DNA of 64,000 nucleotides from Mobula birostris (Eukaryota): positions 180,189,487 to 180,253,486 of the forward strand of contig NC_092374.1 of the NCBI RefSeq assembly GCF_030028105.1. Direction: 5' to 3'. Below are positions 1-52,060 of the stretch, in pieces. The notes under the pieces were generated by a model. It saw only the letters and a program-made list of their open reading frames with translations. It was not told where the DNA came from and made no database searches. Position numbers and translations under genes: made by a program. Each line of letters begins with the position of its first letter. Positions within the stretch are counted from its first letter, which is position 1.

Positions 1-39
1 TTTCAAATTATAAACAATGTGTCTGCAGAACTGAGACTG

Positions 40-119
40 CAGGGGTTACCAATCTTTTTTACACCATGGACCAATACCATTGAGCAAGGGGTCAGTGGAC
101 CCTGAGTTGGGAACCCCTG
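40..119. mobile_element. 80-bp hAT-type MITE
   Basis: TIRs CAGGGGTTACCAA ... GTTGGGAACCCCTG. Same family as 56468-56546 and 59098-59177. No TSD visible here. Confidence 0.75.
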
Positions 120-224
120 GTCCAAAGTCTCACCCACTACACTACTACATTTGAAGCACCGATCCTGTCTTTTAATCAGAGGGTATTTTGGGAAGTGTGA
201 TCACAACTCCTTAAGGTTTAACAA

Positions 225-790
225 ACACAAAAAAATCTGTAAATGCTGGAAATCCAAAACAACACACCCAAAATACTGGAGGAACTCAGCAGAATAAAGC
301 AGAATCTATGGAAAAGAGTATAGTTGACGTTTCAGACCGAGACCCTTCATCGAGACTGAAAAGAAAGAGAAGTCAGAGTAAGAAGGTGGGGGGAGGGGAG
401 GAAGACGTACAAGGTGGAGGTGATAGGTAAAACCATTTCTCATTCCTGTTACCCTCTCTCACCTAGCCTCCTTACCTGTCCATCGCCTCCCGCTGGTACT
501 CATCCCTCTTCCTTTTCTTCCATGGTCTTCTATCCTCTCCTATCAGATTCCCCCTTCTCCAGCCTTTTATCTCTTTCCCTAATCAACTTCCCAGCTCTTT
601 ACTTCACCCCTCCCCCATCCAGGTTTCATCTTTCACCTTCCACTTTGTACGTCTTCCTTCCCTCCCCCCACCTTCTCAGTCTGACCTCTTCCTTTACCAG
701 TCCTGGCCAAGGCTCTTGGCCCAAAACGTCAACTGCTTGTTCTTTTCCAATAGATGCTGCCTAGCCTGCTGAGTTCCTCCAGCATATTAT
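225..790. mobile_element. Penelope-like element ends, inverted pair
   Basis: The 'aaatgctggaaatcc...ggaggaactcagcag...gacgtttcagaccgagacccttcatc' block is followed by its reverse complement (698-790). Both halves carry a decayed hammerhead motif. Confidence 0.75.
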
Positions 791-1460
791 GTGTGTTCCT
801 CACAGTTTAAGATAGTTATGGATAAATCTGGACCTTGAGAAGAATTAAATTGGGGCAGATCAAATTAGATCCCCTGCATCTTAATTTTCTGGATCAGCCT
901 CCAATGAGAGATCTTGTCAAATGCTATTGCAAGTTTATGCAGACAACAATTACTGTACTGTTCTCATCAATCACCTTCATCAGCTTCCTCAAGTCATGTC
1001 AGAGTCCGATGACATTTGGAAGATCATTAATAACGCCTCCACAATCTCAACTGCTACCTCTTGCAGAACGCTAGGGTGCGGTTCATCTGGTCCCGGTAAC
1101 TTATGTAGCCTTAGGTCTTTCAGCTTTTTGTGCACCTTGTAATAGTAACTGGACTCACTTCTCTTCCCTCACACCCTTCAACATCTGGCACACTGCTAGT
1201 GTCTTCCACAGTGAAGACTGACGCAGAATACTCATTTAGTTCACCAGCTATCTGCTTGTCCCCTGTTATTACTCTTCCAGCCCTATAGCTACTCTCATCT
1301 CTCTTATATTTTTTTACATTCTTGAAAAAGCTTTTATTATCCGCTTTGATATTATTTGCTAGCTTGCTTTCATATTTCATCTTTTCCCATCTAATGACTC
1401 TTTTAATTGCTCCTTGTAGGTTTCTAAAAGCTTCCTAATCCTATATAACCATATAACAAT
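790..1460 (-). mobile_element. CR1 LINE ORF2 fragment
   Basis: ORF 1120-1380 YESKLANNIKADNKSFFKNVK resembles the CR1 EN-RT linker. Confidence 0.7.
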
Positions 1461-1470
1461 TACAGCATGG

Positions 1471-2487
1471 TGTTACGTACCCCGTAACTGGGTTGTCAAA
1501 CCAGTAGAAACGGAACACTCGTTGGAGTCTGTGATTACTAGAAACTAGTAAAGTTTTATTAACAAAAATAAGTAATACAGTACACTAACCGCAAGGATAT
1601 AAATGTAACAGGTTAGCAATGATAGTACACAGACACAGGGTAATAGGAATCAACCAAGCTCTATTGCAATCTAGGGGTAAAATGATCAGTCTTAGGTGAA
1701 GCAGAGTTCAGTTCGAAGTAATCGCTGCGCAGTTNNNNNNNNNNNNNNNNNNNNNNNNNNNNNNNNNNNNNNNNNNNNNNNNNNNNNNNNNNNNNNNNNN
1801 NNNNNNNNNNNNNNNNNNNNNNNNNNNNNNNNNNNNNNNNNNNNNNNNNNNNNNNNNNNNNNNNNNNNNNNNNNNNNNNNNNNNNNNNNNNNNNNNNNNN
1901 NNNNNNNNNNNNNNNNNNNNNNNNNNNNNNNNNNNNNNNNNNNNNNNNNNNNNNNNNNNNNNNNNNNNNNGGTTTCAGGCAAACCTTTCGATGCCTTCCA
2001 ATCCCGCTGTGGTCACCGACTGTGACCCCTCTGGTCCGGATGTGACCATTCTTCCGTGGTGAAGCCGGCACCCAGGCAAGGGCGGACACACATCTCCCCA
2101 CCGGTCGTACCTTTACACCCTGTGAGCCTCTGACCGATTCCCACGAATCGGTCCTCCAAACTCCCACTAACTTGTGGGGCACAATACTCTTTCCAGGGTC
2201 TCGTGGCATGTGTACTGTGCCTTAGAAAACCTGCTATTTTTATTCCCCTGATGGGGTATCACCTGTCCATCAAACTTCACACTTCCTATTGTCTCAGCAG
2301 GATTATCAATGAACAGTTCAGGTTCAAAGCAAACTGTGGCAGACGCCAACATACTGAATTATGTGTCTCTCTCTCATTATCTCTCTCTTCTCTCTTATTA
2401 GCATTTTGAATGGCTCGCCGTTGTCTCTCGTTATCTCTCTCATTAACATCATCTGTTCTGCGGCTCTGCTTGGCTTCACACATGACA
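1471..2487. mobile_element. Solo LTR (contains an assembly gap)
   Basis: TGTTAC...TGACA termini interrupt the CR1 tail 'acaattacagca(c)gg|aaacaggcc'. Flanks ATGG/ACAG are consistent with a CpG-decayed ACGG TSD. Confidence 0.65.
1735..1970. other. Assembly gap
   Basis: Run of N. Confidence 1.
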
Positions 2488-2849
2488 ACAGAAACAGGCC
2501 ATCTCGTCCTTTTCTGTCTGTGCTGAACTCTTACCCTATCCTATTCCCACTGACCTGCACTCAGCCCATAACCCTCCATTCCTTTCCTATCCATATATCT
2601 ATCCAATTTAACTTTAAACAACATCCTCTGGCTTCTGACTAAATTTTGCTTTGTTGTATGCCCTCTCTTTTGCTTTTACAGTAGTTTTGACTTCCCTTGT
2701 CAGTCACAGTTGTACTATTTTGCCATTTGAGTGTTTCTTTGTTTTTTGAATACATGTATCTTGCACCTTAATGGCAGGAGGATTTTGGAGTTCGAGCTTA
2801 CAGAAAGAAATTTCTCAGTATAGTCTGGAAAAGATGGCTTTCCTTCATT

Positions 2850-3360
2850 GTTCAGGGTATTGAGTTTAAGACTAAAGGAGTTATGAAGAAAGATTAGGCT
2901 GCCCTTGCAGTATTGTGTACAATTCTGGTTGCCCCATTATAGGAAAGATGTGGAGGCTTTGGAGAAGGCGCAGAAGATGATCACCAGGATGCTTCCCGGA
3001 AAGAGGATACTTGCCGTTAAGCGGAGATTCAACAAACTTGGGATTGTTCTCTTTGGAGCATCGGAAGCTGTGGGGAGAACTGCAAGAGGTTCTAAAATTA
3101 TGCAAGCAAGGTAAAAAGGGGAAAGTGGAAAGATAATGTGAGGGGCAGAATAAGAGTAATCAATTGTCTCAGAGGACTGTGGAGGCCAAGCCACTGGGTG
3201 TATTTAAGGCAGAGTTTGGTAAGTGGATAGGTGAGGAGTTAAGCATTACATTGAGAAAGCAGGCGAATGGAGCTGAAAAACGTTGGTCAGAACTGAATGG
3301 CAGAGCAGATTTGAGGGGTGAAATGGCCAAATTCTGTTCCTATATATTTTATAGTCTCTT
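2850..3360 (+). mobile_element. CR1 LINE 3' fragment
   Basis: QYCVQFWLPHYRKDVEALEKAQ is the CR1 RT C-terminal signature. Confidence 0.8.
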
Positions 3361-4019
3361 ATAAAGAGGCAAAAGTGTTTTAACTTAGTTTGACGTTGTG
3401 TTCGGCACCAATATATCGGGTTAAAGGGCCTGTTCCTGTACTGCTTTGTTCTGTCCTCTACCCACCTACCCACTGAAATGACTGGGAAACCTGGGATCAC
3501 CTACACTCAGTGGAACCTGGTGTGTTGCTCTGCTGCTGCCCCGCAGGCCAACCCACTTCAAGGGTCTACGTGCTGCGCGTTCAGAGATGCTCTTTTGCGC
3601 ACCACTGTTGAAACGTTGATTATTTGAGCAACTGTTACCTCCCTGTCAACTTGAACCAGTCCGGCCATTCTCCTCTGACCTCTCTCATTAACACGGCATT
3701 TTCACCCACAGAACAGCTGCTCACTGGATGCTTTTTGTTTTTCGCACCATTCTCTGTAACTTCTGGAGACTGTTGCACATGAAAACCCCAGCAGATCAGC
3801 AGTTTCTGAGATACTCAGACCACCCCATCTGGCACCAACAATCATTTTCATGGTCAAAGTCGCTCAGATCACATTTCTTCCCCATTCTGGTGTTTGGTCT
3901 GAAAAGCAACTGAACCTGTTGACCATGTCTGCATGCTTTTATGCATCGAGGTGCTGCCACATGATTGACTAATTAGGTACTTGCATTAAAGAGCAGGCAT
4001 ACAGTGTGTACCTAATAAG

Positions 4020-5240
4020 ACCATAACATATAGGAGCAGAATTAGGCCATTCGGCCCATTGCATCTGCCACCATTCCATTATGGCTGATTAATTATCTCT
4101 CTCAACCCAGTTCTCCTGTCTTCTTCTGGTAATCTTTGGCACCCTGATTAATCAAGAACTTTCTGCCTCTGCCTTGAATATACCCAATGGCTTGGCCTAC
4201 ACAGCCGACTGTGGCAATGAATTCCATAGATTCCTGTGGCTAAAGAAATTTTTCCTCATCCCTCACTTTTGAGACTGTGCCCTCTGGCCCTTGACTCTCC
4301 CACAATAGGAAACATCCTCTCCACATCCACTGTATCCAGGTCTTTTTATATTTTATTTGTTTCAATTAGATCCCCACTCATTCTTCTAAATTACAGGCCC
4401 AGAACCATCAAATGCTTCTAATGAATTAACCTCCTCTCACCATCTCCAATACTTCAAGCGTAGTCTGACCAATGCCTCATAAAGCCACAACATTACATCC
4501 TTGCTTTTGTATGCTCATCCTCTCAAAATGAATGCTAATATTACACTTGCCCTCCTCACCACATTATCATGTTCTTCCCTCTGCTTACGTGTGACATAAG
4601 CAGCAATCGAGCTTGCCACCCTGGAGGTCCAGCTTTTCAGCTTTCCACCTACCTCCCTATATTCTCTCTTCAGGACTTCCTCCCTTTCCCCACTTAAGTT
4701 GTTGGTACCAATAGGTATCGTGACTTCCAGCTGTTCAATTTCCCCTTCAGAATACAACGGACCCTATCTGAGACATCTCTGATCACGGCATCTAGGAGGC
4801 AATATGCCGTCCAGGTGTCTCTTTCAGATCCACGAAATCTGCTTTCTGCTCCTCTAATTAAGGAATGTCCGATTACTACTACATTCCTCTTCTCCCGCCT
4901 TCCTCTCTAAGCTACAGTCATACTCAGTGCCAGAGACCTGGTCACTGCAGCTGTCCCTGGTGCGCCATCCAAAGCAGTACACTTATTAGAGAGGGGAATA
5001 GCACTGGCTGCCTATTCTCTCTCCCTCTCCTGACAGTCACCCAGGTACCAGTCTCCTGCAACTTAGGGGTGACTACCTCTCTGGAGCTCCTATCTATCAC
5101 CTCTGTACAAGGTGCAGGTCATCTATCTGCATCCCCAGTTTCTTAACATGGTCTCTAAGGAGAAGTGGCTCAATGTATTTTGTGTAGTTGTAGTTATCAG
5201 GGTGACAGGTAGTCTCTCAGAGTTCCCACATCTCAAATAA
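4020..5240 (-). mobile_element. CR1 LINE fragments (3' end plus ORF1/esterase-like part)
   Basis: CR1 tail 'ccataacatataggagcagaattaggccattcggccc'. ORF 4515-4757 (VTIPIGTNNL...EVLKREYREVGGKLKSWTSRV) resembles CR1 ORF1. Confidence 0.65.
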
Positions 5241-5459
5241 AGAACATGCCACTGCCTCAGCTCCATTCTCAGTGCACTAGATATGTATCATCAGAAGGGA
5301 AAAAAACACTGATCAGAAATTACTTAGAGCCTGCATCTGTGCTTGTCCAAATCTGTTCTCACCTCTGTCTGTTAAGCCAAAGCTGGATCACTCCAACACT
5401 GCCCCGCTCCAACAAGGTCCACTCTGCTTACACCTCCTTTCTATTTATTGGCCTTGCAC

Positions 5460-5650
5460 TGATCGTAGCCTGCCCAAAACAAAAGCCGAAAGCACCTGAG
5501 CTCTTCTTAAACCTCGTGCTGCATTATCATTGAAGACCTCTTGCGCTGATTGAAGCCTGCGAAAGAAAACCAAATTCTCCCAAGCTCCTTTTAAACCTCA
5601 CACTGTATCACCAACAAATGACCTCGCGCTCTGACTGCAGCCCAAAAAGC
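5460..5650. repeat. Degenerate ~86-bp tandem repeat (about 2.2 units)
   Basis: Units start tgatcgtagcc / tgattgaagcc / tgactgcagcc and share ttaaacctc and gacctc. Confidence 0.5.
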
Positions 5651-5717
5651 ACAGATTCAGCCTCAGCATGGCTTCAATTGGTAAAATGGGAATAAACATT
5701 GGAGATGGGGGACTCAC

Positions 5718-5975
5718 CACGTGAATGATTGGTTTGAGACATTATGAATGAAGCAAATTGTTTCAGTGTAATCTGCCGACTCTTGACAAATTCCAGCTTC
5801 CTCTTCCACCACTTGACCCCCTCACTCTTACTCATCCACTGGTCCTGGAGAACCAACGGCTGATCACTGTTGTAGGTCATGAACTTGACGCCGTCCACAT
5901 AGCCCACAGACAGAAACTGCGGGAAGTCGGGAATCTCAAATGTGGAGGTCACAAGAAATTGGAGGAGATGAGAGG
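5718..5975 (-). CDS. MHC class I heavy chain alpha1-domain exon (nonclassical)
   Basis: 258-nt phase 1-1 exon with acceptor ctctctttttcag| and donor |gtgagt. Encodes xSHLLQFLVTSTFEIPDFPQFLSVGYVDGVKFMTYNSDQPLVLQDQWMSKSEGVKWWKRKLEFVKSRQITLKQFASFIMSQTNHSR. Has the class I hallmarks P-x-F-x-x-VGYVD, W51, W60 and the N86 sequon (NHS). Confidence 0.95.
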
Positions 5976-6049
5976 CTGAAAAAGAGAGGGGATGAAATGC
6001 AGTCAGTTCACTGAATGAGATAACGTGTCAAGATGCAGACACCAAGTCA

Positions 6050-6880
6050 CAGTCTGTGACAGGTGAAGAGATGGGGGTTCAGCACCCCGTCCCTTCAACA
6101 GATGGGGGCAGGGTGTGAATGGCGGGGTGGGTAGTCTGTCTGGTGCTGTGTACCTTCCCCCTGACCTCAGTATGTGCCAAAGACACACACTTAAGGCTCC
6201 CAATCCCATCCCTAGTTTTCTTTCCTCACATTGAGCAGAGGCAGATCAGACATTCCCAGGAGTCAGTAGGGAATGCTGCATCTCCTCACTGAGTCTTGGA
6301 ACTTACCCTTGAACCTTTTCCTCTGCCCACTCGGAGATCTGATCTCCTGGACAGAGCTTGGGATGGGGTCTGGGGTAGGACTTGTGAATGAGGTGACTTG
6401 CCTCATCAGAGCGGACTCAGTGTGACCAGGGTCGCGGGATGAGGATGCATGTCTGGGATGGGTCGCTAATGCCAGTTCCCTGACCCTTCCCGTGGGTTCA
6501 GGGGATTCTGTGGTGACGGTGTTGGTGGTGTTTTCCAGCGCCAGGAGATGAGTAGCCCCACGTTTCAGAAGCACACACGAGGGCAGGGGTCACTGTTGTC
6601 CAGTCAACCACAAGTTTTATGCCACATCTGCAGCCTTGATCTTCACCCACCCTTCCCTTTTCCTGATTGACCAACTCTTGTTCCGCTCACAGAGGGTGAA
6701 GTACCATTCTCCACGTTTGCCGTCACCAAGTGCTGTTTTCTGGCACAAGGGAAGTAATCCATTTTCCAGGGTCTCCCCGTGAGCCCTTGGGGAGATCAGC
6801 TCTGGTGGTCAGTTCGTTGGAACGAGATGCAACATCAGAGAAAAGTGGGTCCTGAGGGAAATGACACTACACACCCTCAT
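6050..6880 (-). mobile_element. Old RTE-clade LINE 3' fragment in class I intron 1
   Basis: Frameshifted RTE motifs: cctgccctcgtgtgtgcttctgaaacgtgg (PALLYASETW-like) and RSPSGQRKRFK (RTE GGQRKRFKD-like), followed by an RTE-like C-terminus and 3' end. Confidence 0.75.
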
Positions 6881-6920
6881 CCAATACCGGACTTCACTGA
6901 GGTTAGTGCCGGTCCATGAT

Positions 6921-7260
6921 GAAACACACACACACACTCTCTCTCAGAGACACACACACACACACACACTCTCTCTCTCTCTCTCACACACACACTCTCT
7001 CTCTCTCAGACACTCTCTCTCTGACACACACACACAAACTCTCTCACACACACANNNNNNNNNNNNNNNNNNNNNNNNNNNNNNNNNNNNNNNNNNNNNN
7101 NNNNNNNNNNNNNNNNNNNNNNNNNNNNNNNNNNNNNNNNNNNNNNNNNNNNNNNNNNNNNNNNNNNNNNNNNNNNNNNNNNNNNNNNNNNNNNNNNNNN
7201 NNNNNNNNNNNNNNNNNNNNNNNNNNNNCACTCCCACACAGACACACGCACTCAGACACA
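6921..7260. repeat. (CA)n/(CT)n compound microsatellite spanning a gap (N 7055-7228)
   Basis: Direct reading. Confidence 0.95.
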
Positions 7261-7268
7261 AGCCTCAC

Positions 7269-7395
7269 CTTTTCTCCCGCTCCAGTCTCCAGCTGTATCT
7301 CGCCTCTCTCCCAGCCCCGTCACTGACTTTACACTTGTCTGAAAGCAGACATTCCACCTCTCCCGGAAGTTCCAGGAGTCTCGCGCATATCGATA
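7269..7395 (-). promoter_or_regulatory. Intronic CpG patch resembling a housekeeping promoter and non-coding first exon
   Basis: ETS/GABP CCGGAAGT at 7363-7370, TCTCGCG at 7379-7385, donor AAAG|gtgagg at 7269/7268, followed by a GT-rich tract. No productive ATG. Confidence 0.35.
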
Positions 7396-7439
7396 GTGGC
7401 TCCCTGACACCCGAAAATTATATACAATATCCCAGAAAT

Positions 7440-7863
7440 AGATTTTTTTGAGAGCGAGAGAATGTAAATGTCAGCCCAGATCAGAGGCGATTTGCATCGT
7501 CTCTGATCTGGGCCGATATTTACGTGCAGGGCGGCACCTAATCAATTAGCTTGTTTATTTCGGCTTTTTTCTTAAAGATGGGCTGGGTGCGTTCTGGCTA
7601 CCACTGCATGCTTCACGGCCCGGAGGTTTGGGACCACTGTTATGATTGACTTATCAATACATTCACGCGAGGAAAATATGTGCTGTGTGTTTAATATTAA
7701 ATTCGTTAGATTAAACCCCTTTAGGAACTAAATTGAGTGTATTAGCCACTTACTAGTGACTTACAGTTGACTTATCACCTCCGCCACCCCCGGGTCGGCC
7801 GGTCCGCGAGAATATTGCCAATATTAAACCGGTGCGCGGTGCAAAAAAGGTTGGGGACCCCTG
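7440..7863. mobile_element. Nested hAT MITE fragments
   Basis: TIR-like ends 'ggtttgggaccactg' (~7629) and 'ggttggggacccctg' (7863). The interior 'aatattgccaatattaaaccgg' is shared with 26821-27026. Confidence 0.7.
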
Positions 7864-8230
7864 ATTTAAACTAGCTGGCTAGCTGCCACGGAGCTACGCT
7901 ATTGATGTCCTACGTGATGAGGCCAAACTCCCTGTAGACTAGCTTAAAGTTGTAATAGAATAAACATAATATAAGTACATATCTTAATGTCACACATACA
8001 CAACTTGGTTTACAGATTAGACAAAATCACTAAACAAAGTATTACATACATCCTTGGAGGTCGAGGTCGACGGGGGGGGGGGGGGTGCAGATATGGGGTT
8101 GCGGACGGCGGAGTGCTACCTCCCTGAAATGGGTTTTTGCAGGGTGGGATGTCTGTGAAAGGAAACTCCTTCCCCAGGCTCGACCCCCCCCCCCCCCACC
8201 ACACTGACCCTTCCCCACACCATCACTTAC

Positions 8231-8294
8231 GTGCGGAGGCCTCTCCACGCTGGAAGACGAACACTATCAACACCGCTCTCAAGGACGCTTCCAT
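8231..8294 (-). CDS. MHC class I leader (signal peptide) exon
   Basis: ATG at 8294 encodes MEASLRAVLIVFVFQRGEASA plus 1 nt, then donor |gtaagt. Phase 1 joins in frame to the alpha1 exon. Normal n/h/c regions with A-x-A. Confidence 0.9.
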
Positions 8295-8321
8295 TTCTCG
8301 GAACTGAAAAAAATTCACGGC

Positions 8322-8417
8322 AGAAGCGAAACTAACCAGCATATAACCATATAAGGTTTTGGTCCAATCAGAAACATCAGTAGACGGCGTGTCACCAGTC
8401 TCCGGGTAGAAGAGCAC
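8322..8417 (-). promoter_or_regulatory. MHC class I promoter: X1-X2 box, Y box, TATA-like element, ISRE
   Basis: CTTCTACCCGGAGACTGGTGACACG resembles the HLA class I X1X2 as I recall it (CTTCTTCCAGGATACTCGTGACGCG). Y box CTGATTGG at 8364-8371, TTATAT near 8341-8353, ISRE-like AGTTTCGCTTCT at 8322-8333. Confidence 0.8.
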
Positions 8418-8439
8418 TGAGGACGCGGTGAGCTCAAAA

Positions 8440-9970
8440 CTTCAAAATAAGTTCATTACCAAAGCACGTTGTGTCATCATATACTACTCTAAGATTCAGT
8501 TTCTTGCGAGTAGAACAAATAAACATAGAAAACCTAGAGCTCAATACAGGCTCTTCGGCTCACAATGCTGTGCCGAACACGTACTTTAGAAGTTACCTCG
8601 GGTTACCCATAGCCCTCTATTTTTTTTAAGCTCCACGTACCTTGTACTGTTAAGAATTACAATCGAATCATTGAAAATATTACACACAAAGACTGACCAA
8701 CAACCAATGTGCAAAAGATGGCAAACTGTGCAAATACAGTACAAAAATAATATAAAATACAAACGTTTGTAATATCAAGGATATAAGTTGACTTGTAGAG
8801 TCCTTGAAAGTGAGCCCACAGGTTAGGGAATCAGTTCAGTGCAGAAGTGAGTGAGGTTATCCACACTGGATCAGGAGCCTGATTGTTGAAGAGTAGTAAC
8901 TATTCCTGAACCTGACGGTGTGGGACCTAAGATATCTGTACCTCCTTCCCAATGGCATCAGTGAGAATAGAGCTTGGCCCGGACTGTGGGGTTCCTAGAT
9001 GGCAGATGCTGCTTTCTTGTGGCAGTGTTCCTTGTAAATGTGCTCAGTGGTGGGAAGGGCTTTCCTCTGGACTGTATCCACTACTGTTCAGAGGCTTTTC
9101 CATTCTTAGGCATTGGAGTTCCTGTACTGCACTGTGAGGCAGTCAGGGTACCCTCCACAGTGCATCCACAAAGGCTGGTCAACGTTCTAGATGACATGCT
9201 GACTCTGCACAAACTTCCATGAAAGTAGAAGTACTGCCCGCGTCTTTGTGAATGGGCAAAAGATTTGAGCCTGGAATTTGTTTGCTAATGAGATTGAAAG
9301 ACACAGTCAGAGACCTGATTTGTGCTTCCTCTGTTGTGTTGTCATAATCAAAATCAAGTTTATTGCCATATACACAAATACAAGTACACGTACGCACGTG
9401 TGCAATGAAAATTTTACTTGCAACTGGTGACACTGCTTTGGAGCACCTGGACAACTGTAATACCCATGTCAGGCCAATTACAGAATGGCATTCAACACCA
9501 CCATCCCCTCTGTACTTACAACCAGGCTTCAGAACCTGGGCTTCTGAACCTCTGCAATTGAATCCTTGATTTCCTCACTGGGAGACCACAGTCAGTCCAG
9601 ATTGGAAATAACATGTCCTCACTGACAGTCAACAGAGGCATACCTCCAGTATGGGGGCTTAGTCCGCTGCTCTACGCTCTCTGCACACTGACTGTGAGGC
9701 TAAGCACAGCTCAAATGTCACCGATGATGCCACTGTTGGTAGAATCAATGAGCGAGGTAGATTGCATAGTTGAATTGTGTGGCAACAAGCTTGCACACAT
9801 CAGTACGATCAAGGAACTGAAATTTGCCTTCAAGAGGGGAAGTCAGAACACACACCAGTGCCCATTGAAGTCTTAAATGCAATCTTAAAGATAGCAAGCC
9901 AATGGCTATACTTCATTAAGAATTTGAGGAGATTCAATATGTCACTAAAATACTTGCATTTATGCAAGTT
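8440..9970. mobile_element. Rex1/Babar-type LINE fragments, both orientations
   Basis: Remnants of GxPQGxxLSPLLY-like and FYRCTxESIL-like segments plus the family 3' tails. Confidence 0.65.
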
Positions 9971-10084
9971 TTGTTTAGTTTCTGTTAATTCAAATTTATG
10001 TTAACTTATGCTTATCCTTGTCTTGTAACATACCATGTTACTGTTGCACAATGATAATTTTATGGCATTTATCCTGTGTAAGAA

Positions 10085-10560
10085 TGCCTAGAACCAGGTC
10101 AGGTCACTCGTCTGAGTGCTACTGGTACCACGGAACCCAGTACTACCCGTCGCATGGTCGGCGGTCAGCGTCTAAACCGGCTCCCCCAACAGGCTTGCCT
10201 GGTGAGGAGGGTAGTGAGACACCCTGCAGGACGAAAAACAAGACCTGTCAAAGGGAGGATGAACCCTCTCGTAGGGTCAACGGCCATCTAGCAAACATGT
10301 GCCGTGAAGTGCGGAAAGGGCATCCCTCGCATCGAAGGTTGGTCTAGCTATTCACTGCAACAGAACTTCTCCCAGCCGTCTTGGACCCCACTATGCCGCT
10401 GGATTGGGGAGGGCTCGTCGAGAGGGTGGGTCTGGACCTGTGCAACCCCCTACTCACCTAAAATCCACTCAGGCACACGCTGTTCCTTTCTGAGGAGCAG
10501 AGTGCCACCCCGCTAACTGACTGAAAGGAACCACCATCATCCTATGGGATGGATAGCCAG
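10085..10560 (+). mobile_element. Probable RTE-type LINE 5' UTR fragment
   Basis: GC-rich, non-coding, ending 'gggtctggacctgtgcaaccccctactcacctaaaa', which resembles RTE 5' ends. Confidence 0.35.
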
Positions 10561-10789
10561 AGAGAGATAACAATAGACTTGAACATGAAGAAATTTCTAC
10601 AAGCCTCGCTCTTAAGTGCACATCATGATCCTGGAGTCAGAAGTTCCTGTGTGGCCTCCACAGATACTGAGGGAGAAGGTTCCAGACGTCCCCTCCCTCC
10701 TGGTCAGAAAGACATACAGCCTGAAAACAGGCCCTTCAGCCCATCAGATTTGTGCTGATCCTCAACCACCCATTTACATTAATCCTATA

Positions 10790-11040
10790 GTTTTTTATTC
10801 TCCCCTCATTCCCATCACTTCCCCTCAGGTTCTACCCTTCAAATACACTCTGGGTCAGCGGCCAATTAATCTACCACCCTGCACAACTTAGGAATGTGGG
10901 AGGAAACTGGAGCACCTGGAGGAAACCCACACGGTCATGGGGAGAACATACAAACTCCTTACGGACAATGGCGAGAATCAAACTCTAATTGATAACTGCT
11001 GGTGCTCGAAAGTGACCGCACTGACTGCTAAACTACTGTG
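10790..11040 (-). mobile_element. V-SINE/HE1-like SINE
   Basis: Reverse complement of the V-domain core 'gggtttcctccaggtgctccagtttcctcccacattcc'. Confidence 0.75.
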
Positions 11041-11044
11041 ATGC

Positions 11045-11560
11045 ACGTTTGAAGTATTGTGATCAATTCTGGGCTCTGCATCTAATGAAGGACGTGCTGG
11101 TGTTGGGGAGGGTCCAGAGAAGGTTTACGAGAATGATCCCAGGATGAAAGGTTTAACATAAGAAGGGTGTTTGATGCCTCCAGGACTGTACTCGATGAAG
11201 TTCAGAAAGATGGAGGGGAGGTGGCATCTGCTTGAAAGCTACTTGATACTGAAAGGCCTATGTGGAGTGGCCATGGAGAGCATCAGAGGGCACAGCCTCT
11301 GTCCCTTTGGAACGGAGATGAGGAGGGATTCCTTCAGTGGAATGGTGAATCTGTGGATTTCCTTATCATAGGGGACTGTGGAGGCCAAGTCAATGAATGG
11401 ATTTAAGGCAGAGATTGAAATGTTATTGACTGGTGAGAAGGTTAAGTTTTACTGGGAGAAGGTGGAGAATGGGGTTAAAAATAATCAGCCATGATTGTCT
11501 AGCAGAGCAGACCATGATTGAACAGGCTAAGTCAGCTCCCGTTTCTGCTCTTATGGTAAC
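11045..11560 (+). mobile_element. CR1 LINE 3' fragment
   Basis: 'gtattgtgatcaattctgggctctgcatct...gagggtccagagaaggtttacgagaatgatcccagg' matches the CR1 3' RT region. Confidence 0.75.
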
Positions 11561-12499
11561 ACATGCAGTCATAGGGAGAAAATGAAAACTCCAGATAGTC
11601 AGTGCCGGGTATTTGGATCGAACGCAGGTCTTGGGGGTCGTGAGGGTGCAACTCTACCTGTCGGGCCACCGTGCTAACCCGCAGGAGTTCATTGCTGCCA
11701 CCTCCTTACTTTGCGGCTCTTCTTGGGTGTGTAGTAAAGAAAGGGGAGTGGACACAGGATCCGGGAGAAAAGGCATCCGTGCACAGTCCCACAAACCCGT
11801 GCAAGCACAGGGAACCCCGTTCCTCCAACACCCAAGCCAATGTCCAGATACTAAGCTTTTCTAGGGACCACAGTGTGTTCTGCCCTGCCTTGGAGATGAA
11901 GTTCTCTGTCACCTCCTCCCCCTTGAACCCTTCCTCAGCCCACAGGTCGCTCCGAGCTTCAGAAGCTGGTCTTCACCCTGTCGCCTGGTTGCCAGTAGTT
12001 GCCTCAATCTGTTCACTGGGCTCGGCCACAAACTCTCCCAGCTCATGAGCCCTCATCAGAGCTGACTTTTGAGAGTGTTGGCTTCCCACAAGATCCTGGG
12101 GATATCACTCTCTGTTCCTGAGTAGCACTTCCATTCCTATCCCGGAGCCCCAGGGGAAATGGGAAGCCCACCACTCTGAACTCGAGCAGTCAGACCTTTG
12201 AGCTGTTCCACCACTCAGTACTGTCATGGTTGATCCAATCTCGGCTTCAGCACCACCAGGGCACCCTCTCTCCATTTCCGCCCAGACTTGTTCAAACGCT
12301 TGCCTTGAAAATGTTCAGTGACTTTGCCTTCATATCTTTGATCTGTCCCACCTCAACTCCCCTCTCTCCAGCCTTTCTGTTTGTAAACTCTGTCACAACA
12401 AAGCCCAGGGCAAGTTGAGGAATAGCACCTCACCTTCCATCTGGGTACGTTGAAGTCTTCTGCATCTAATGCTTGATTCTACAACTTTAGCTTACTTTC

Positions 12500-27849: not shown

Positions 27850-29015
27850 AATTGAGGTGGTGTTCAAGGGTTCAATGTCCATTTAGGAATCAGATGTCAG
27901 AGAGAAAGAAGCTGTTCCTGTATCGCTGAGTGTGTTCCTTTTGGCTTCTGTACCTCCTACCTGATGGTAACAGTGAGAAAAGGGCGTGCCCTGGGTGCTG
28001 GAGGTCCTCAATAATGGACGCTGCCTTTCAGAGACACTGCGCCTTGAAGATGTCCTGAGTACTTTGTAGGCTAGTACCCAAGATGGAGTTGACTAGATTT
28101 ACAACTTTCTGTAGCTTCTTTCTGTCCTGTGCAGTAATCTCACCCCCATACCAGACAGTGATGCAGCCTGTCAGAATGCTCTCCACGGTACATTATAGAA
28201 GTTTTTGAGTGTATTTGTTGAAGTGTAGTCATTGTCTTGCCTTCTTTATAACTGCATCGATATGTTGGGACCAGGTTAGATCCTCAGAGATCTTGACACC
28301 CAGGAACTTGAAACTGCTCACTCTCTCCACTTCTGATCCGTCTATGAGGATTGGTATGTGTTCCTTCACCTTACCCTTCCTGAAGTCCACAATCAGCTCT
28401 TTCGTCTTACTGACGTTGAGTGCCAGGTTGTGGCTGCAGTACCATTCCACTAGCTGGCATATCTCACTCCTGTACGCCCTCTCGTCATCATCTGAGATTT
28501 TACCAACAATGGTTGTATCATCAGCAAATTTATAGATGGTATTTGAGCTATGCCTAGCCACACAGTCATGGGTATATAGAGAGTAGAGCAGCGGGCTAAG
28601 AACACACCCCTGAGGTGCACCAGTATTGATCATCAGTGAGGAGGATATGTTATCACCAATCCGTACAGATTGTGGTCCTCCAGTTAGGAAGTTGAGGATC
28701 CAATTGCAGAGGGAGGTACAGTGGCCCAGGTTCTGCAACTTACCAATCAGGATTGTGGGAATAATGGTATTAAATGCTGAGCTATAGTATAGCATCCTGA
28801 CATAGGTGTTTATGTTGTCCAGGTGGTCTAAAGCCATGTGAAGAGCCATTGAGATTGCATCTGTTGTTGACCTATTGTGGCGATAGGCAAACTGCAATGG
28901 GTCCAGGTCCTTGCTGAGGCAGGAGTTCAGTCTAGTCATGACCAAACTCTCAAAATATTTCATCACTGTCGATGTGAGTGCTACCAGGCGCTAGACATTA
29001 AGGCAGCCCACATTA
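27850..29015 (-). mobile_element. Rex1/Babar RT fragment (245-aa open stretch at 28229-28966)
   Basis: RT core motifs [15 protein letters not shown] and FKFLG. Confidence 0.9.
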
Positions 29016-39944: not shown

Positions 39945-40830
39945 CAGTGGTACGCAAAAGTTTGGGCACCCCTGATCAAAATTTCTGTTACTGTGAATAG
40001 CTAAGAGAGTAAAAGATGAACTGATTTCCAAAAGGCATAAAGTTAAAGCTGACACACTTCTTTAATATTTTAAGCAAGAAAACTTTTTTATTTCCACCTT
40101 TTACAGTTTCAAAATAACAAAAAAGGAAAAGGGCCCGAAGCAAAAGTTTGGGCACCCTGCATGGTAGTACTTAGTAACACCCCCTTTGGCAAGTATCACA
40201 GTTTGTAAGCGCTTTTTGTAGCCAGCTAAGAGTCTTTCAATTCTTGTTTGGGGGATTTTCACCCATTCTTCCTTGCAAAAGGCTTCTAGTTCTGAGAGAT
40301 TCTTGGGCTGTCTTGCATGCACAGCTCTTTTGAGGTCTATCCACAGATTCTCGATGATGTTTAGGTAGGAGGACTGTGAGGGCCATGGCAAAACCTTCAG
40401 CTTGCTCCTCTTGAGGTAGTCCATTGTGGATTTTGAGGTGTGTTTAGCTTCATTATACTGTTGTAGAAGCCATCCTCTTTTCATCTTCTGCTTTTTTATA
40501 CACGGTGTAATGTTCACTTCCAGAATTTGCAGGTATGTAATTGAATTCATTCTTCCCTCTATCAGTGAAATGTTCCCTGTGCCACTGGCTGCAACACAAG
40601 CCCAAAGCATGATTGATCCACCCCTGTGCTTAACAGCTGGAGAGGGGTTCTTTTCATGAAATTCTGCACCCTTTTTTCTCCAAACATACCTTTGCTCATT
40701 GCAGCCAAAAAGTTCTATTCAAAAGGTTCAAAGGAACATCTAAACAAGTCTGATGCATTTTGGAAACAAGTCCTGTGGACTGATGAAGTTAAAATAGAAC
40801 TTTTTAGCTGCAATGAGCAAAGGTATGTTT
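39945..40830 (-). mobile_element. Tc1-like transposon, truncated (IR/DR type)
   Basis: TA|CAGTGG end. The inner DR caaaagtttgggcacc is repeated at ~39955 and ~40141. ORF 40101-40610 contains WPSQSSYLNIIENLW (Tc1 DDE C-terminus). Confidence 0.9.
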
Positions 40831-41320: not shown

Positions 41321-42335
41321 AATGTTCAGGGGGTATTGTATGTCTGTGGAAAAGGAAAATGTGGCATCAATGGATACCATAGAGGTGTTTCAGGACCGTT
41401 GGGCACTGCAGGGGTTAAATCCCATCCTTGTAGAGGATGGGAATGTATTAGTTTGGTCTGTGCTAGTCATGATTTGTTTGGTTTTTGTTTGTAATATGAT
41501 TGTACAAACTGTAATGGTTTAAATTTATAATAAATGTATTTTTGTAAAAAAAGGGGACTGTTGCTTTTCCTTCCAAATTCCACAATGCATTTCGTGGTCT
41601 TGCTAATGTTAAACACAAGGTTGTTGTTTTGACACCACTCAACTAGCCAATCTATCTCACTCCTTGTCACAATCTATGATTCTGCCAACAACACTTGTAC
41701 CATTGGTAAGTTTATAGATGGTGTTTAAGCTGTGCCTAGTCGTGAATATAGAGAGAACAGCGCAGCAGTCGAAGGACACATCCACCTCAAAATCCTAATG
41801 AAGTCCAGCCAGTGGCATGCCTTTGTCGTAACTGCACCGACGTGTGGGCCAGGGCCCAGGATAGATTCTCTAAGACATCGATGCCCAGGAACTGGAATTG
41901 CACTCAGCCTGTATTTTGGTTCTCTGCACATCTCCGTCACCTCTCCCCAGACTCTCGCCCACATCCACACACTCAGGGCAATTCACGGCAGACAATGATC
42001 CCACTAACCCTCAGGGATGTGGGAGGAGCATTGTTCTGCACTCTGTCACTGCTTTTCCAATGTACAACCTCAGTGTAGTTACGTATGGAATGATCTGAAT
42101 GGTATGCAAACACAGGTTTTTCACTGTACGTGTGGGAATATTAAACCAATCAGCAATTGGACCAGGTGGGGAATGTTAATGACATCAGGATGGAGCTGGA
42201 GACCAACAGCTGCTCCCTTCAGTCCACATCGGATCTCGAGGGAAGCACAGAGCATTCCTCTGATTGGGTTCACTCATTTATCAAACACAGTATCAAAGAG
42301 ATTAGGGCTAAGGCTTCATCTTCAGAGCATTCTCC

Positions 42336-42642
42336 GTGTTCTTCTACCTGGAGACTGGTTATACACTTCTTTTGATGATGTTTCTGATTGGGGTGCAAGC
42401 CCCCTCATCGGTTACAGTACCCGGTTAATTTCACTTCCTCGGTGGATCCAGGTTCTGGAGATGGAGGAGGTACGCTCTCTAGCAGTGGGGTCGACAATGT
42501 CGGGGGGGGGGGTGGTGGTTCTCTGTTAGCAGGTGACGGTGACAGATGGGATGAGGCACTCCGCTAGCTGGTGACGGTGACAGATGGGGTGAAGCTCTGA
42601 GCCTCAGTGTGTGTTGGGGAAAGGGGTGGTTTCCCTCAGACA
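42336..42642 (+). pseudogene. Orphan paralogous MHC class I promoter, decayed leader and intron-1 start
   Basis: 25/29 identity to the X box at 8389-8417 (opposite strand), a 16/16 tgatgtttctgattgg Y-box block and a 13/16 ISRE block. ATG at 42461 with an in-frame TAG at 42527-42529. 42615-42642 resembles 8150-8176. No class I domain exon follows. Confidence 0.75.
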
Positions 42643-47465: not shown

Positions 47466-47796
47466 CCGTTTGTCTATGGATACCTAGCCAACAACACTAC
47501 CTATGCCAGGCCACCCTTTATCGATTATAGCCTGGTGTTCAACAAACATGAGAAAATCTGTAGATCCTGGAAATCCAAAGCAACACACACAAAATGATGG
47601 AGGAACTCAGCAGGCCAGGCGGCATCTATGGAAAAGAGTGAATAGTCAATGTCTTGGGCCGAGACCCTTTAGCAGGACTGGAAAAGAAGTGGGAAGAAGT
47701 CAGCTTAAGAAAGTGGGGGGAGGAAAGGAAGAAGTACAAAGTGATAGGTGATAGGTGAAACTGAGAGAGGGGAAGGGGTGAAAGACTAAGGAGCTG

Positions 47797-48545
47797 GTGG
47801 TAGACCTGAGGAGAGCTAAGATACCGGTGACCCCTGTTTCCATCCAGAAGGTCAGTGTGGACATCGTGGAGGATTACAAATACCTGGGGATAATAATTGG
47901 CAATAAACTGGACTGGTCAAAGAACACTGAGGCTGTCTACAAGAAGGGTCAGAGCCGTCTCTATTTCCTGAGGAAACTGAGGTCCTTTAACATCTGCCGG
48001 ACGATGCTGAGGATGTTCTACGAGTCTGTGGTGGCCAGTGCGATCATGTTTGCTGTTGTGTGCTGGGGCAGCAGGCTGAGGGTGGCAGACACCAACAGAA
48101 TCAACAAACTCATTCCTAAGGCCAGTGATGTTGTGGGGATGGAACTGGACTCCCTGACGGTGGTGTCTGAAAAGAGGATGCTGTCTAAGTTGCATGCCAT
48201 CTTGGTCAATGTCTCCCATCCACTACATAATGTACTGGGTGGGCACAGGAGTACATTCATCCAGAGACTCATTCCACCGAGATGCAACACAGAGCGTCAT
48301 AGGAAGTCATTCCTACCTGTGGCCATCAAACTTTACAACTCCTCCCTTGGAGGGTCAGACACCCTGAGCCAATAGGCTGGTCATGGACTTATTTCATAAT
48401 TTACTGGCATAATTTACATATTACTATTTAACTATTTATGGTTCTATTACTATTTATTATTTATAGTGCAACTGTAACGAAAACCAATTTCCCCCGGGAT
48501 CAATAAAGTATGACTATGACTATGACTATGACTATGACTACAACT
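47797..48545 (+). mobile_element. Rex1/Babar 3' end with a (TATGAC)n tail, inserted in a Penelope fragment
   Basis: YKYLG..NKLDWSKNT..KKGQSRLYFLRKLRSF. Penelope sequence flanks it on both sides (47545-47795 and 48545-48900). Confidence 0.85.
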
Positions 48546-49379: not shown

Positions 49380-50480
49380 TATACTTATACTTTATACTTC
49401 ATTGTCGCCCAACAATTTGATACATACAATCATCACAGCAATATTTGTTTCAGCGCTTCCTGCTCCCTGGATTACAAATCAATAGTAAATATTAAAAATT
49501 TAAATTATAAATCATAAATAGAAAATAGAAAAATGGAAAGTAAGGTAGTGCAAAAAAACTGAGAGGCAGGTCCAGATATTTGGAGGGTACGGCCCAGATC
49601 CGGGTCAGGATCTGTTCAGCAGTCTTATCACAGTTGGAAGGAAGCTGTTCCCAAATCTGGCCGTACGAGTCTTCAAGCTCCTGAACCTTCTCCCAGAGGG
49701 AAGAGGGACGAAAAGTGTGTTGGCTGGGTGGGTCGTGCCCTTGATTATCCTGGCAGCGCTGCTCCGACAGCGTGCGGTGTAAAGTGAGTCCAAGGACGGA
49801 AGATTGGTTTGTGTGATTTGCTGCATCGTGTTCACGATCTTTTGCAGCTTCTTCCAGTCTTGAATGGGACAACTTCCATACCAGGTTATGATGCACCGTA
49901 GAAGAATGCTTTCTACAGTGCATCTATAAAAATTAGCGAGGGTTTTAGGGGACAGGCCAAACTTCTTTAGTTTTCTCAGGAAGTAAACGCGCTGGTGGGC
50001 CTTCTTGGCAGTGGACTCTACTTGGTTGGACCAAGTCAGGCCATTTGTGACATTGACCCCGAGGAACTTAAAGCTTTTGACCTGTTCCACTTGCGCACCA
50101 CCGATGTAAATTGGGTCGTGTGGTCTGCTACTCCTTCTGAAGTCAACAACCAATTCCTTCGTCTTGCTGACGTTGAGGGATAGGTTATTGTCTTCGCACC
50201 ATGCCACCAGGTTCTTAATTTCCTCTCTGTACTCAAACTCATCATTATCCGAGATACGGCCTACAATTGTTGTGTCATCAGCAAACTTATATATTGAGTT
50301 TGATGGAAACTTAGCTACCCAATCATGGGTGTACAGTGAGTACAGCAGGGGCTGAGCCTTGTAGGGCACCGGTGCTCAGAGTGGTGGTAAAGGAGAGCTT
50401 GTCCCCTGTTTTTACAGCCTGGATCCTGTCTGTGAGGAAGTTGAAGATCCAGCTGCAGATCTGAGTGCTAAGGCCCAGGT
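49380..50480 (-). mobile_element. Rex1/Babar RT 3' fragment (254-aa open stretch at 49605-50369)
   Basis: [32 protein letters not shown]. Confidence 0.9.
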
Positions 50481-51279: not shown

Positions 51280-52060
51280 CCTTGTAACTCGGGCCCGGCT
51301 GTCCGCCGCGAAGCGCTGCGGCCACTGCGCTCCGCCCCTCCGGGAGCCGATCTTCGCCACTCCCACCTCCCTCCTCGTCGCCCCAGCACCGTTTCCTCCT
51401 CAGTGTGTGAGAGAGGACGCGGGTAGCTTCTGTGCAGCGCCTGCCCGACAGCTCTTCTGCAGTGCTGTTGAAAGAGAGAGAGAGAGCAGGAGTCGGGGAC
51501 CTCTGCAGGGACTGAGTTTGCTGACAGTTTTCAGGAGGTTATCTCACTCTCTCTGCAACTCTCTGATCAGATGAGAGCCGAACTAGACAGGAGTGTGCTG
51601 ACGCCACTTTGAAGAGCGGGGCAGGGAGTCCCGGGCTGATGTCCCGCCGGAGGAAGACAGTGGCTGCTGTTACCATGAAGGCTCCGGGACCCGGGCAGGG
51701 TTAGCCGGACTCATCAGCCGGCTCGGGCAGAGGAGGAGAGGTTGCCAGACCCCGGAGGAGTCTGGGTAGGGTCCTGCTGCCCCGGGACACCTCATGCTGG
51801 CTCGAACGGTCCGTCACCTCCTGGACGGGGTGAAGCTAGAGCTGTCGGGGGACCCCGACGTGGTGCTGAGCGGCTACAGGGCGAGGGACCCGGACCAGGA
51901 GACACCGCTGGTAAGTTTCGGGCACCTGCACATTTTCCGCGGACAGAGCCGTGGATGGGAGGATGGTGGTGGGTGGGGGGGCGCGGGTGAGTAGAGACAT
52001 GGGTCTCTCTCGGCCCATCCACATCCTGTTCAGAAGAGCATAGCTCGTCTCCGCCCCGCG
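51280..52060 (+). promoter_or_regulatory. RGL2: CpG island, promoter and 5' leader of RGL2
   Basis: Sharp rise in CpG and GC content, a GC box CCGCCCC at 51332-51338, and it precedes the RGL2-like ATG. Confidence 0.8.
51794..51910 (+). CDS. RGL2: Ral guanine nucleotide dissociation stimulator-like 2, first coding exon
   Basis: MLARTVRHLLDGVKLELSGDPDVVLSGYRARDPDQETPL|gtaagt (phase 0). Matches the human RGL2 N-terminus as I recall it (MLPRPLRLLLD...VVLSSFRSRDP) and RalGDS (WDAVRLEV...VVL...DPD). RGL2 is an MHC-region gene. Confidence 0.8.

Follow-up and report, generated by a model that had tools for sequence, protein, structure and literature searches.

A manta ray class Ib gene placed in the UBA lineage, in the cluster beside C4, has replaced most of its peptide-end anchors

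The UBA genes of sharks are an expanded family derived from UAA, a family credited to a 1997 paper (2025 review, PMC12562908), and they form a separate multicopy cluster flanked by C4, apart from the B2M-to-COL11A2 cluster (PMC10751288). The sawfish Pristis pectinata shows an order of RGL-like, three class Ib genes and C4 (PMC10751288 supplement). The class Ib gene adjoining C4 there, LOC127586083 on chr34, encodes XP_051899850.1, and among relatives outside Mobula it stands closest to the manta gene described here (62% identity overall, 58% in alpha1). Shark UBA is a non-classical family whose members keep Y7, R84 and Y171, and usually W147 and Y159 as well. As UBA references we took the sequences O19479 (Ginglymostoma) and O19480 (Heterodontus), which we understand to be those of Bartl 1997. 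No explicit UBA label for Gici-11 or Hefr-19 was found in the sources searched, and neither the XP accessions nor the term 'UBA' was found in the MBE supplement.

The manta gene was read from a 64-kb stretch of the Mobula birostris genome (the window), on its minus strand (Table 1). We consider it likely that the two exons found there, with the promoter in front of them, belong to a non-classical class I heavy-chain gene of the UBA lineage, situated next to C4 in the class Ib cluster; of the identity and lineage of the gene as such we are highly confident.

Table 1. Parts of the class I gene that lie within the 64-kb window, listed in the direction of transcription.
Feature	Position	Strand	Description	Evidence
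Proximal class I promoter	8295..8425	-		Blocks conserved in the sawfish upstream region
Exon 1, coding part	8231..8294	-	Signal peptide, 21 codons plus phase-1 base; ATG at 8294, end at 8231, donor gtaagt	Read; 100% match to XP_072115084.1 residues 1-21
Intron 1	5976..8230	-	2,255 nt as assembled	Bounded by the donor and acceptor sites seen in the sequence
Assembly gap	7055-7228		Inside intron 1, in a TG/GA-type simple repeat (microsatellite)	
Exon 2, alpha1 domain	5718..5975	-	258 nt, phase 1 at both ends	100% match to XP_072115084.1 residues 23-107
Intron 2, first 5.7 kb	1..5717	-	Transposon debris; second gap at 1735-1970	

Exon 1 encodes the leader peptide MEASLRAVLIVFVFQRGEASA. Exon 2 is preceded by a pyrimidine tract and the acceptor ttttcag, holds two bases, 85 codons (SHLLQF...SQTNHSR) and one base, and is followed by the donor gtgagt. 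The two exons are in frame, because the codon split between them as C and CC encodes proline (Pro22). Their joint product is identical (100%) to residues 1-107 of XP_072115084.1, a 351-aa RefSeq protein of M. birostris. With good splice sites at hand as well, this bears out the original prediction, made from the letters of the window, that leader and alpha1 exons are unbroken and join without loss of frame. The alpha1 exon alone scored 37.5 bits against Pfam MHC_I, for which the cut-off is 28.3 bits, and its best solved relative was nurse shark UAA, 6LUP.

In intron 1 the assembly gap is separated from exon 1 by ∼1.0 kb and from exon 2 by ∼1.1 kb; TRF places dinucleotide arrays of AC and CT at its low-coordinate flank, and by eye the letters at its other flank are TG-rich. 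Since the gap is within the intron, the reading frame across it is irrelevant. Continuity of exon 1 with exon 2 is supported through one line of evidence, the M. birostris and M. hypostoma models, which come from separate assemblies and make the same exon join. Rfam gave no match on window positions 1-12000, intron 1 included. Exon 2 was the sole class I-like exon that tblastn found in the window. No alpha2, alpha3 or TM exon turned up in the 64 kb, whether by motif scans or by tblastn, for which the query set was 95 and later 224 class I proteins, and the gene's own product, used as the tblastn query, matched only exons 1 and 2. The annotated gene spans 16,239 nt, so it continues ∼8 kb beyond the window start and its intron 2 is at least 5.7 kb long.

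What follows alpha1 is therefore given from the RefSeq model, in which the leader and alpha1 of XP_072115084.1 lead on to alpha2 and alpha3, then to a membrane anchor and tail. RefSeq auto-named this protein 'zinc-alpha-2-glycoprotein-like'. It has class I architecture, an alpha1-alpha2 unit (Pfam MHC_I, 115 bits) followed by a C1-set Ig domain (46 bits), and alignment finds the cysteine pairs C101-C164 and, in alpha3, C203-C259 (GCDL...KECVQW and LSCLATGF...FSCRVEH). The N86 glycosylation sequon is present (NHS), and it alone among these sequence hallmarks is encoded within the window. In the annotated model the membrane anchor is the hydrophobic stretch ILLIVGLLAILMVLAITIGAVY and the tail is VKRKYNATRTTDD, in which there is no YXXphi endosomal sorting motif. 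A TM-less isoform, X2, of 319 aa has the same leader and alpha1 (100% over 85 residues). An AlphaFold2 model of XP_072115084.1 takes a normal class I fold with a mean pLDDT of 86. M. hypostoma has a 94%-identical orthologue with a complete frame and equal gene layout. Going by the RefSeq models of the two Mobula species, the downstream exons are apparently intact, and the missing or broken exons that the original prediction had named as a mark of a pseudogene are not what the annotation gives.

Positions in the groove come from aligning the protein with 6LUP and with class I sequences of sharks and rays, not from coordinates. Residues at 7, 59, 84, 143, 146, 147, 159 and 171, the eight peptide-end anchors, are F, W, Q, I, Q, C, F and Y in the manta gene; F, W, Q, I, Q, C, F and F in sawfish XP_051899850.1; and Y, Y, R, T, K, W, Y and Y in classical UAA. 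The manta gene thus keeps one anchor of eight (Y171), short of what a classical molecule keeps, and is non-classical. The original prediction had inferred as much from alpha1, and the full protein agrees. The residues it had assigned by hand were also found in our alignment: F7, W59, Q84, N86-H-S, K63, R70, F66, V67, L74, F77, F80 and I81.

It had further described the groove as mostly hydrophobic. The residues behind that description are correct, but they do not set this molecule apart. Hydrophobic residues occupy 26 of 44 groove positions, vs 17–25 in classical UAA and 25–30 in the ray relatives; the count falls within the relatives' range, and hydrophobicity is therefore not distinctive. 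The groove is instead unusually basic, with R62, K63, R70, R152 and R155 against one acidic residue, for a net charge of about +4. All five basic residues are common to sawfish XP_051899850.1. Cys147 has no obvious partner cysteine and, as judged from sequence, is presumably a free thiol.

A careful maximum likelihood (ML) tree was built from 79 class I proteins of sharks, rays and outgroups, with support given as ultrafast bootstrap / SH-aLRT. The manta gene and its M. hypostoma orthologue paired at 100/100, and both Mobula genes joined sawfish XP_051899850.1 at 95/87. These fell in a ten-member ray clade that includes the protein of the neighbouring manta gene, XP_072115087.1 (100/100), and this in turn lay within a thirty-member clade that also holds O19480 of Heterodontus and O19479 of Ginglymostoma (100/99). 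The larger clade leaves out shark UAA and ray UAA alike, so the manta gene is outside both UAA groups. At 0.51 the branch to the Mobula gene is long, perhaps a sign of relaxed constraint. An alpha1-only tree, an analysis that the original prediction had proposed, gave the same placement as the full-length tree; the window exon was therefore not shuffled in from elsewhere, and alpha1 exon shuffling from another lineage is ruled out.

Membership of UBA is well supported in this tree, which held no labelled UCA, UDA, UEA, UFA or UGA references. Membership of UEA/UCA is made unlikely indirectly, in a tree without labelled UEA/UCA sequences, because the manta gene sits within a UAA-derived clade. 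A search with alpha1 alone against 1.84 billion representative sequences gave a different impression, the closest being ∼40–46% identical over short stretches. Among the members of the matched clusters we found the annotated manta protein itself, in a cluster represented by its paralogue, and for that reason the search of representatives is misleading. The sawfish gene likewise came to light among cluster members.

Gene order is in keeping with the tree. In the manta, the XP_072115087.1 gene comes next after this class I gene, and after it, on the opposite strand, a C4-like gene; the arrangement recurs in M. hypostoma. The manta gene thus lies in a class Ib cluster beside C4, as expected of a UBA locus. 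The sawfish gene stands directly beside C4, whereas in the manta the XP_072115087.1 gene stands between. The latter is a paralogue from the same ray clade, adjacent, on the same strand and 52% identical; unlike the gene studied here it lacks residue 59 and the N86 sequon, and it has an 18-residue insert before the membrane anchor.

Likeness to the sawfish gene extends beyond its location in the same cluster. The anchor pattern is near-identical, the five basic positions are shared, intron 2 is long in both (∼6 kb in sawfish, read from genomic DNA), and promoter blocks are conserved. The two differ at position 171 (Y in manta, F in sawfish) and at many positions of the alpha1 helix, differences that are reflected in the long Mobula branch. 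With shark UBA the manta gene has in common the 100/99 clade, R62-K63 and often R70, at 43–48% identity; whereas shark UBA keeps the anchors named above, the ray members, this gene among them, have lost almost all of theirs. Classical UAA (6LUP) has the same fold and domain order at 36–37% identity, and it keeps all eight anchors where the manta gene keeps one. UEA/UCA and the CD1-like UFA/UGA resemble the manta gene in having lost peptide anchors, with less polar residues in their place. Those genes cluster between B2M/BRD2 and COL11A2/RXRB and the manta gene lies elsewhere; in our tree it groups with the UAA-derived UBA clade, and it has no endosomal tail motif.

For XP_072115084.1 the best match in both Foldseek and sequence searches was shark UAA 6LUP (sequence 2e-59), and the top-ranked matches by fold and sequence were shark, chicken and fish class I and MR1. 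MR1 ranked high, at ∼31–32% identity, and has aromatic and basic groove residues alike; on alpha1-alpha2 alone its score did not exceed that of class I from chicken or carp, and no evidence of orthology was found. The position that we take to be the ligand-binding Lys43 of MR1 is Leu in the manta gene, by our own alignment to MR1. The 50 Foldseek matches listed were classical class I and MR1 chains with no CD1-type chain among them, and there was no CD1 in the top 60 PDB sequence matches. A CD1-like fold was rejected on the lack of CD1 among the matches listed; on that ground and on the lack of YXXphi in the tail, a CD1-style endosomal lipid sampler is not favoured.

The proximal promoter carries the X1/X2-like block CTCTTCTACCCGGAGACTGGTGAC, the Y box CTGATTGG and, ∼30 nt upstream of the ATG, the ISRE-like GGTTAGTTTCGCTTC. 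Blocks conserved between manta and sawfish over the upstream 130 nt are CTCT.CTACCCGGAGACTGGTGAC, CTGATTGG and GGTT.GTTTC.CTT, which we read as X/Y-box and ISRE-like elements on the assumption that these are the MHC promoter motifs. A second copy of the promoter blocks is found at 42.3 kb of the window. The window carries an orphan promoter-plus-leader remnant.

A working product of this gene could be pictured as follows. An SXY/ISRE-type promoter would drive transcription; the protein would pair with beta2-microglobulin and reach the cell surface, as suggested by its classical-like alpha3, WVTP loop and tail, the last without YXXphi. Its groove would be unable to clamp peptide ends, given that Tyr has made way for Phe or Trp, Arg84 and Lys146 for Gln, and Trp147 for Cys. 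Conventional peptide clamping is unlikely because seven of eight anchors are replaced, at both groove ends. The groove would instead offer an aromatic and aliphatic surface together with R62, K63, R70, R152, R155 and a presumably free Cys147. We tentatively favour a small hydrophobic or anionic molecule as ligand in place of a conventionally bound peptide, or no ligand at all. Receptors of innate-like T cells or of NK type may recognise the molecule. The anionic lipid or metabolite that the original prediction had named as ligand is speculative: the groove is indeed positively charged overall, but classical class I and MR1 chains lead the fold and sequence matches, with no CD1-type chain among those listed.

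The main rival to this picture, which we regard as rather unlikely, is unconventional peptide presentation, in which hydrophobic or N-blocked peptides would be loaded in the ER as in classical molecules and held without end-clamping. It draws on the descent of UBA from classical UAA (PMC12562908), on the WVTP loop shared with UAA, on Y171 and the classical-like alpha3 and tail, and on the best structure and sequence matches being peptide-binding class I molecules. The replacement of seven of eight end-anchoring residues, at both ends of the groove, weighs against it. As a rule, most peptide-end anchors are retained in those class Ib molecules for which peptide binding is known. A more specific proposal, speculative and in our estimate quite improbable, makes the manta and sawfish sub-branch a long-conserved ray class Ib for small anionic or thiol-reactive metabolites; this would be a functional analogue of MR1 in animals lacking MR1, and its ligand would be captured by Cys147 or by the basic residues. 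Features common to the sub-branch are W59, Q84, the five basic groove residues and Cys147, which in this proposal is free and points into the groove.

The gene could also be a pseudogene or silent relic, of which promoter, leader and alpha1 survive while the rest is unexpressed or broken downstream. The window offers some grounds for this, in that it lacks alpha2 and alpha3 exons, has transposon debris and a gap in the 5.7 kb downstream of exon 2, and has in its orphan remnant a demonstration that such fragments occur; moreover, protein searches found no transcript-derived copy of XP_072115084.1. Yet the frame is complete in the RefSeq models, at 351 aa in M. birostris and with 94% identity to it in M. 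hypostoma; the sawfish gene too has a long intron 2, so that such a length is ordinary here; and the promoter blocks are conserved with sawfish. Alpha1 of the manta and sawfish genes also differs at a dN/dS of 0.42 (dN 0.27, dS 0.64, 85 codons). We therefore think a relic improbable. Least probable of all, to the point of being scarcely tenable, is the reading proposed at the outset, a new, unassigned or UEA/UCA-like class I lineage with a lipid-binding groove. Its appeal lay in a very divergent alpha1, at most ∼46% identical to anything among the 1.84 billion representatives, and in the loss of all three alpha1 anchors. Against it stand the sawfish gene, at 58% alpha1 identity; the nesting of the gene at 100/100 and 100/99 in a clade of ray and shark sequences that includes those of Bartl 1997, recovered by full-length and alpha1-only trees alike; a groove hydrophobicity equal to that of its relatives; and the lack of a CD1-type chain among the top matches listed and of an endosomal motif in the tail. 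The proposed novelty of the lineage thus falls away: the gene nests in a described lineage, has in sawfish a relative with nearly the same groove residues, and maps to the class Ib cluster that adjoins C4.

The gene, already present in public annotation, is a member of the known UBA family, in the expected cluster beside C4. What it adds concerns the family in rays, whose UBA genes have discarded peptide-end anchors much further than those of sharks. Among them the manta and sawfish sub-branch, which spans two ray orders, has kept an unusual groove signature (W59, Q84, C147 and five basic residues) and, with it, a conserved promoter. Because groove signature and promoter are conserved over that distance, this sub-branch is a reasonable candidate for ligand-elution work on UBA molecules.

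The promoter blocks found upstream of the UBA-type class Ib gene (X1/X2-like, Y box and ISRE-like stretches) occur a second time in the window, near 42.3 kb on the forward strand. There they are followed by ATGGAGGAG and then by a decayed leader-like ORF, which reads MEEVRSLAVGSTMSGGGVVVLC before reaching a stop. The promoter of the sawfish (Pristis pectinata) counterpart aligns with this second set of blocks as well. A tblastn search of the 64-kb window found no alpha1 exon besides that of the main gene. The segment looks like an orphaned 5' remnant of a class I gene whose remainder has been lost. In the sawfish, intron 2 of the counterpart gene carries a partial duplicate of its alpha1 exon, covering the 3' third and matching residues 78–110 of the protein (XP_051899850.1) at 100%.

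Features mapped in the manta window and in the sawfish DNA carrying the counterpart gene (L001)
Feature	Location	Strand	Sequence
Second copy of class I promoter blocks, with the decayed leader-like ORF	window 42330-42545	+	CTTCTACCTGGAGACTGGT, CTGATTGG, GGTTAATTTCACTTCC
Long reverse-transcriptase-like ORFs and one Tc1/mariner-like transposase ORF	window 28232-28990, 49608-50375, 47782-48372, 40104-40718	-, -, +, - (respectively)	
GC-rich open stretch	window 51770-51991	+	contains VVLSGYRARDPDQE
Partial duplicate of sawfish alpha1 exon (3' third), intron 2	L001:13566-13664		

Many repeat families, inverted and direct, are spread over the 13–37 kb region; together with the reverse-transcriptase-like and transposase ORFs, they indicate that the window is mostly transposon sequence. 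The GC-rich open stretch may resemble the N-terminus of RGL2, and a putative RGL2 at this position would fit the sawfish gene order of RGL-like, class Ib, C4.

The neighbouring class Ib gene (P0212, XP_072115087.1) spans 20.4 kb and lies outside the window, ∼10.5–31 kb before its start. Ahead of the membrane anchor it encodes an 18-residue insert, IQPDLLSSSSIFSGLCWI. This insert is shared by Hemitrygon, M. hypostoma and one Logan-assembled ray sequence, and is therefore old. For the main gene, the RefSeq annotation lists a 319-aa isoform X2 (P0217) that skips the connecting-peptide/TM exon, itself located outside the window; this predicted isoform would give an anchorless form.
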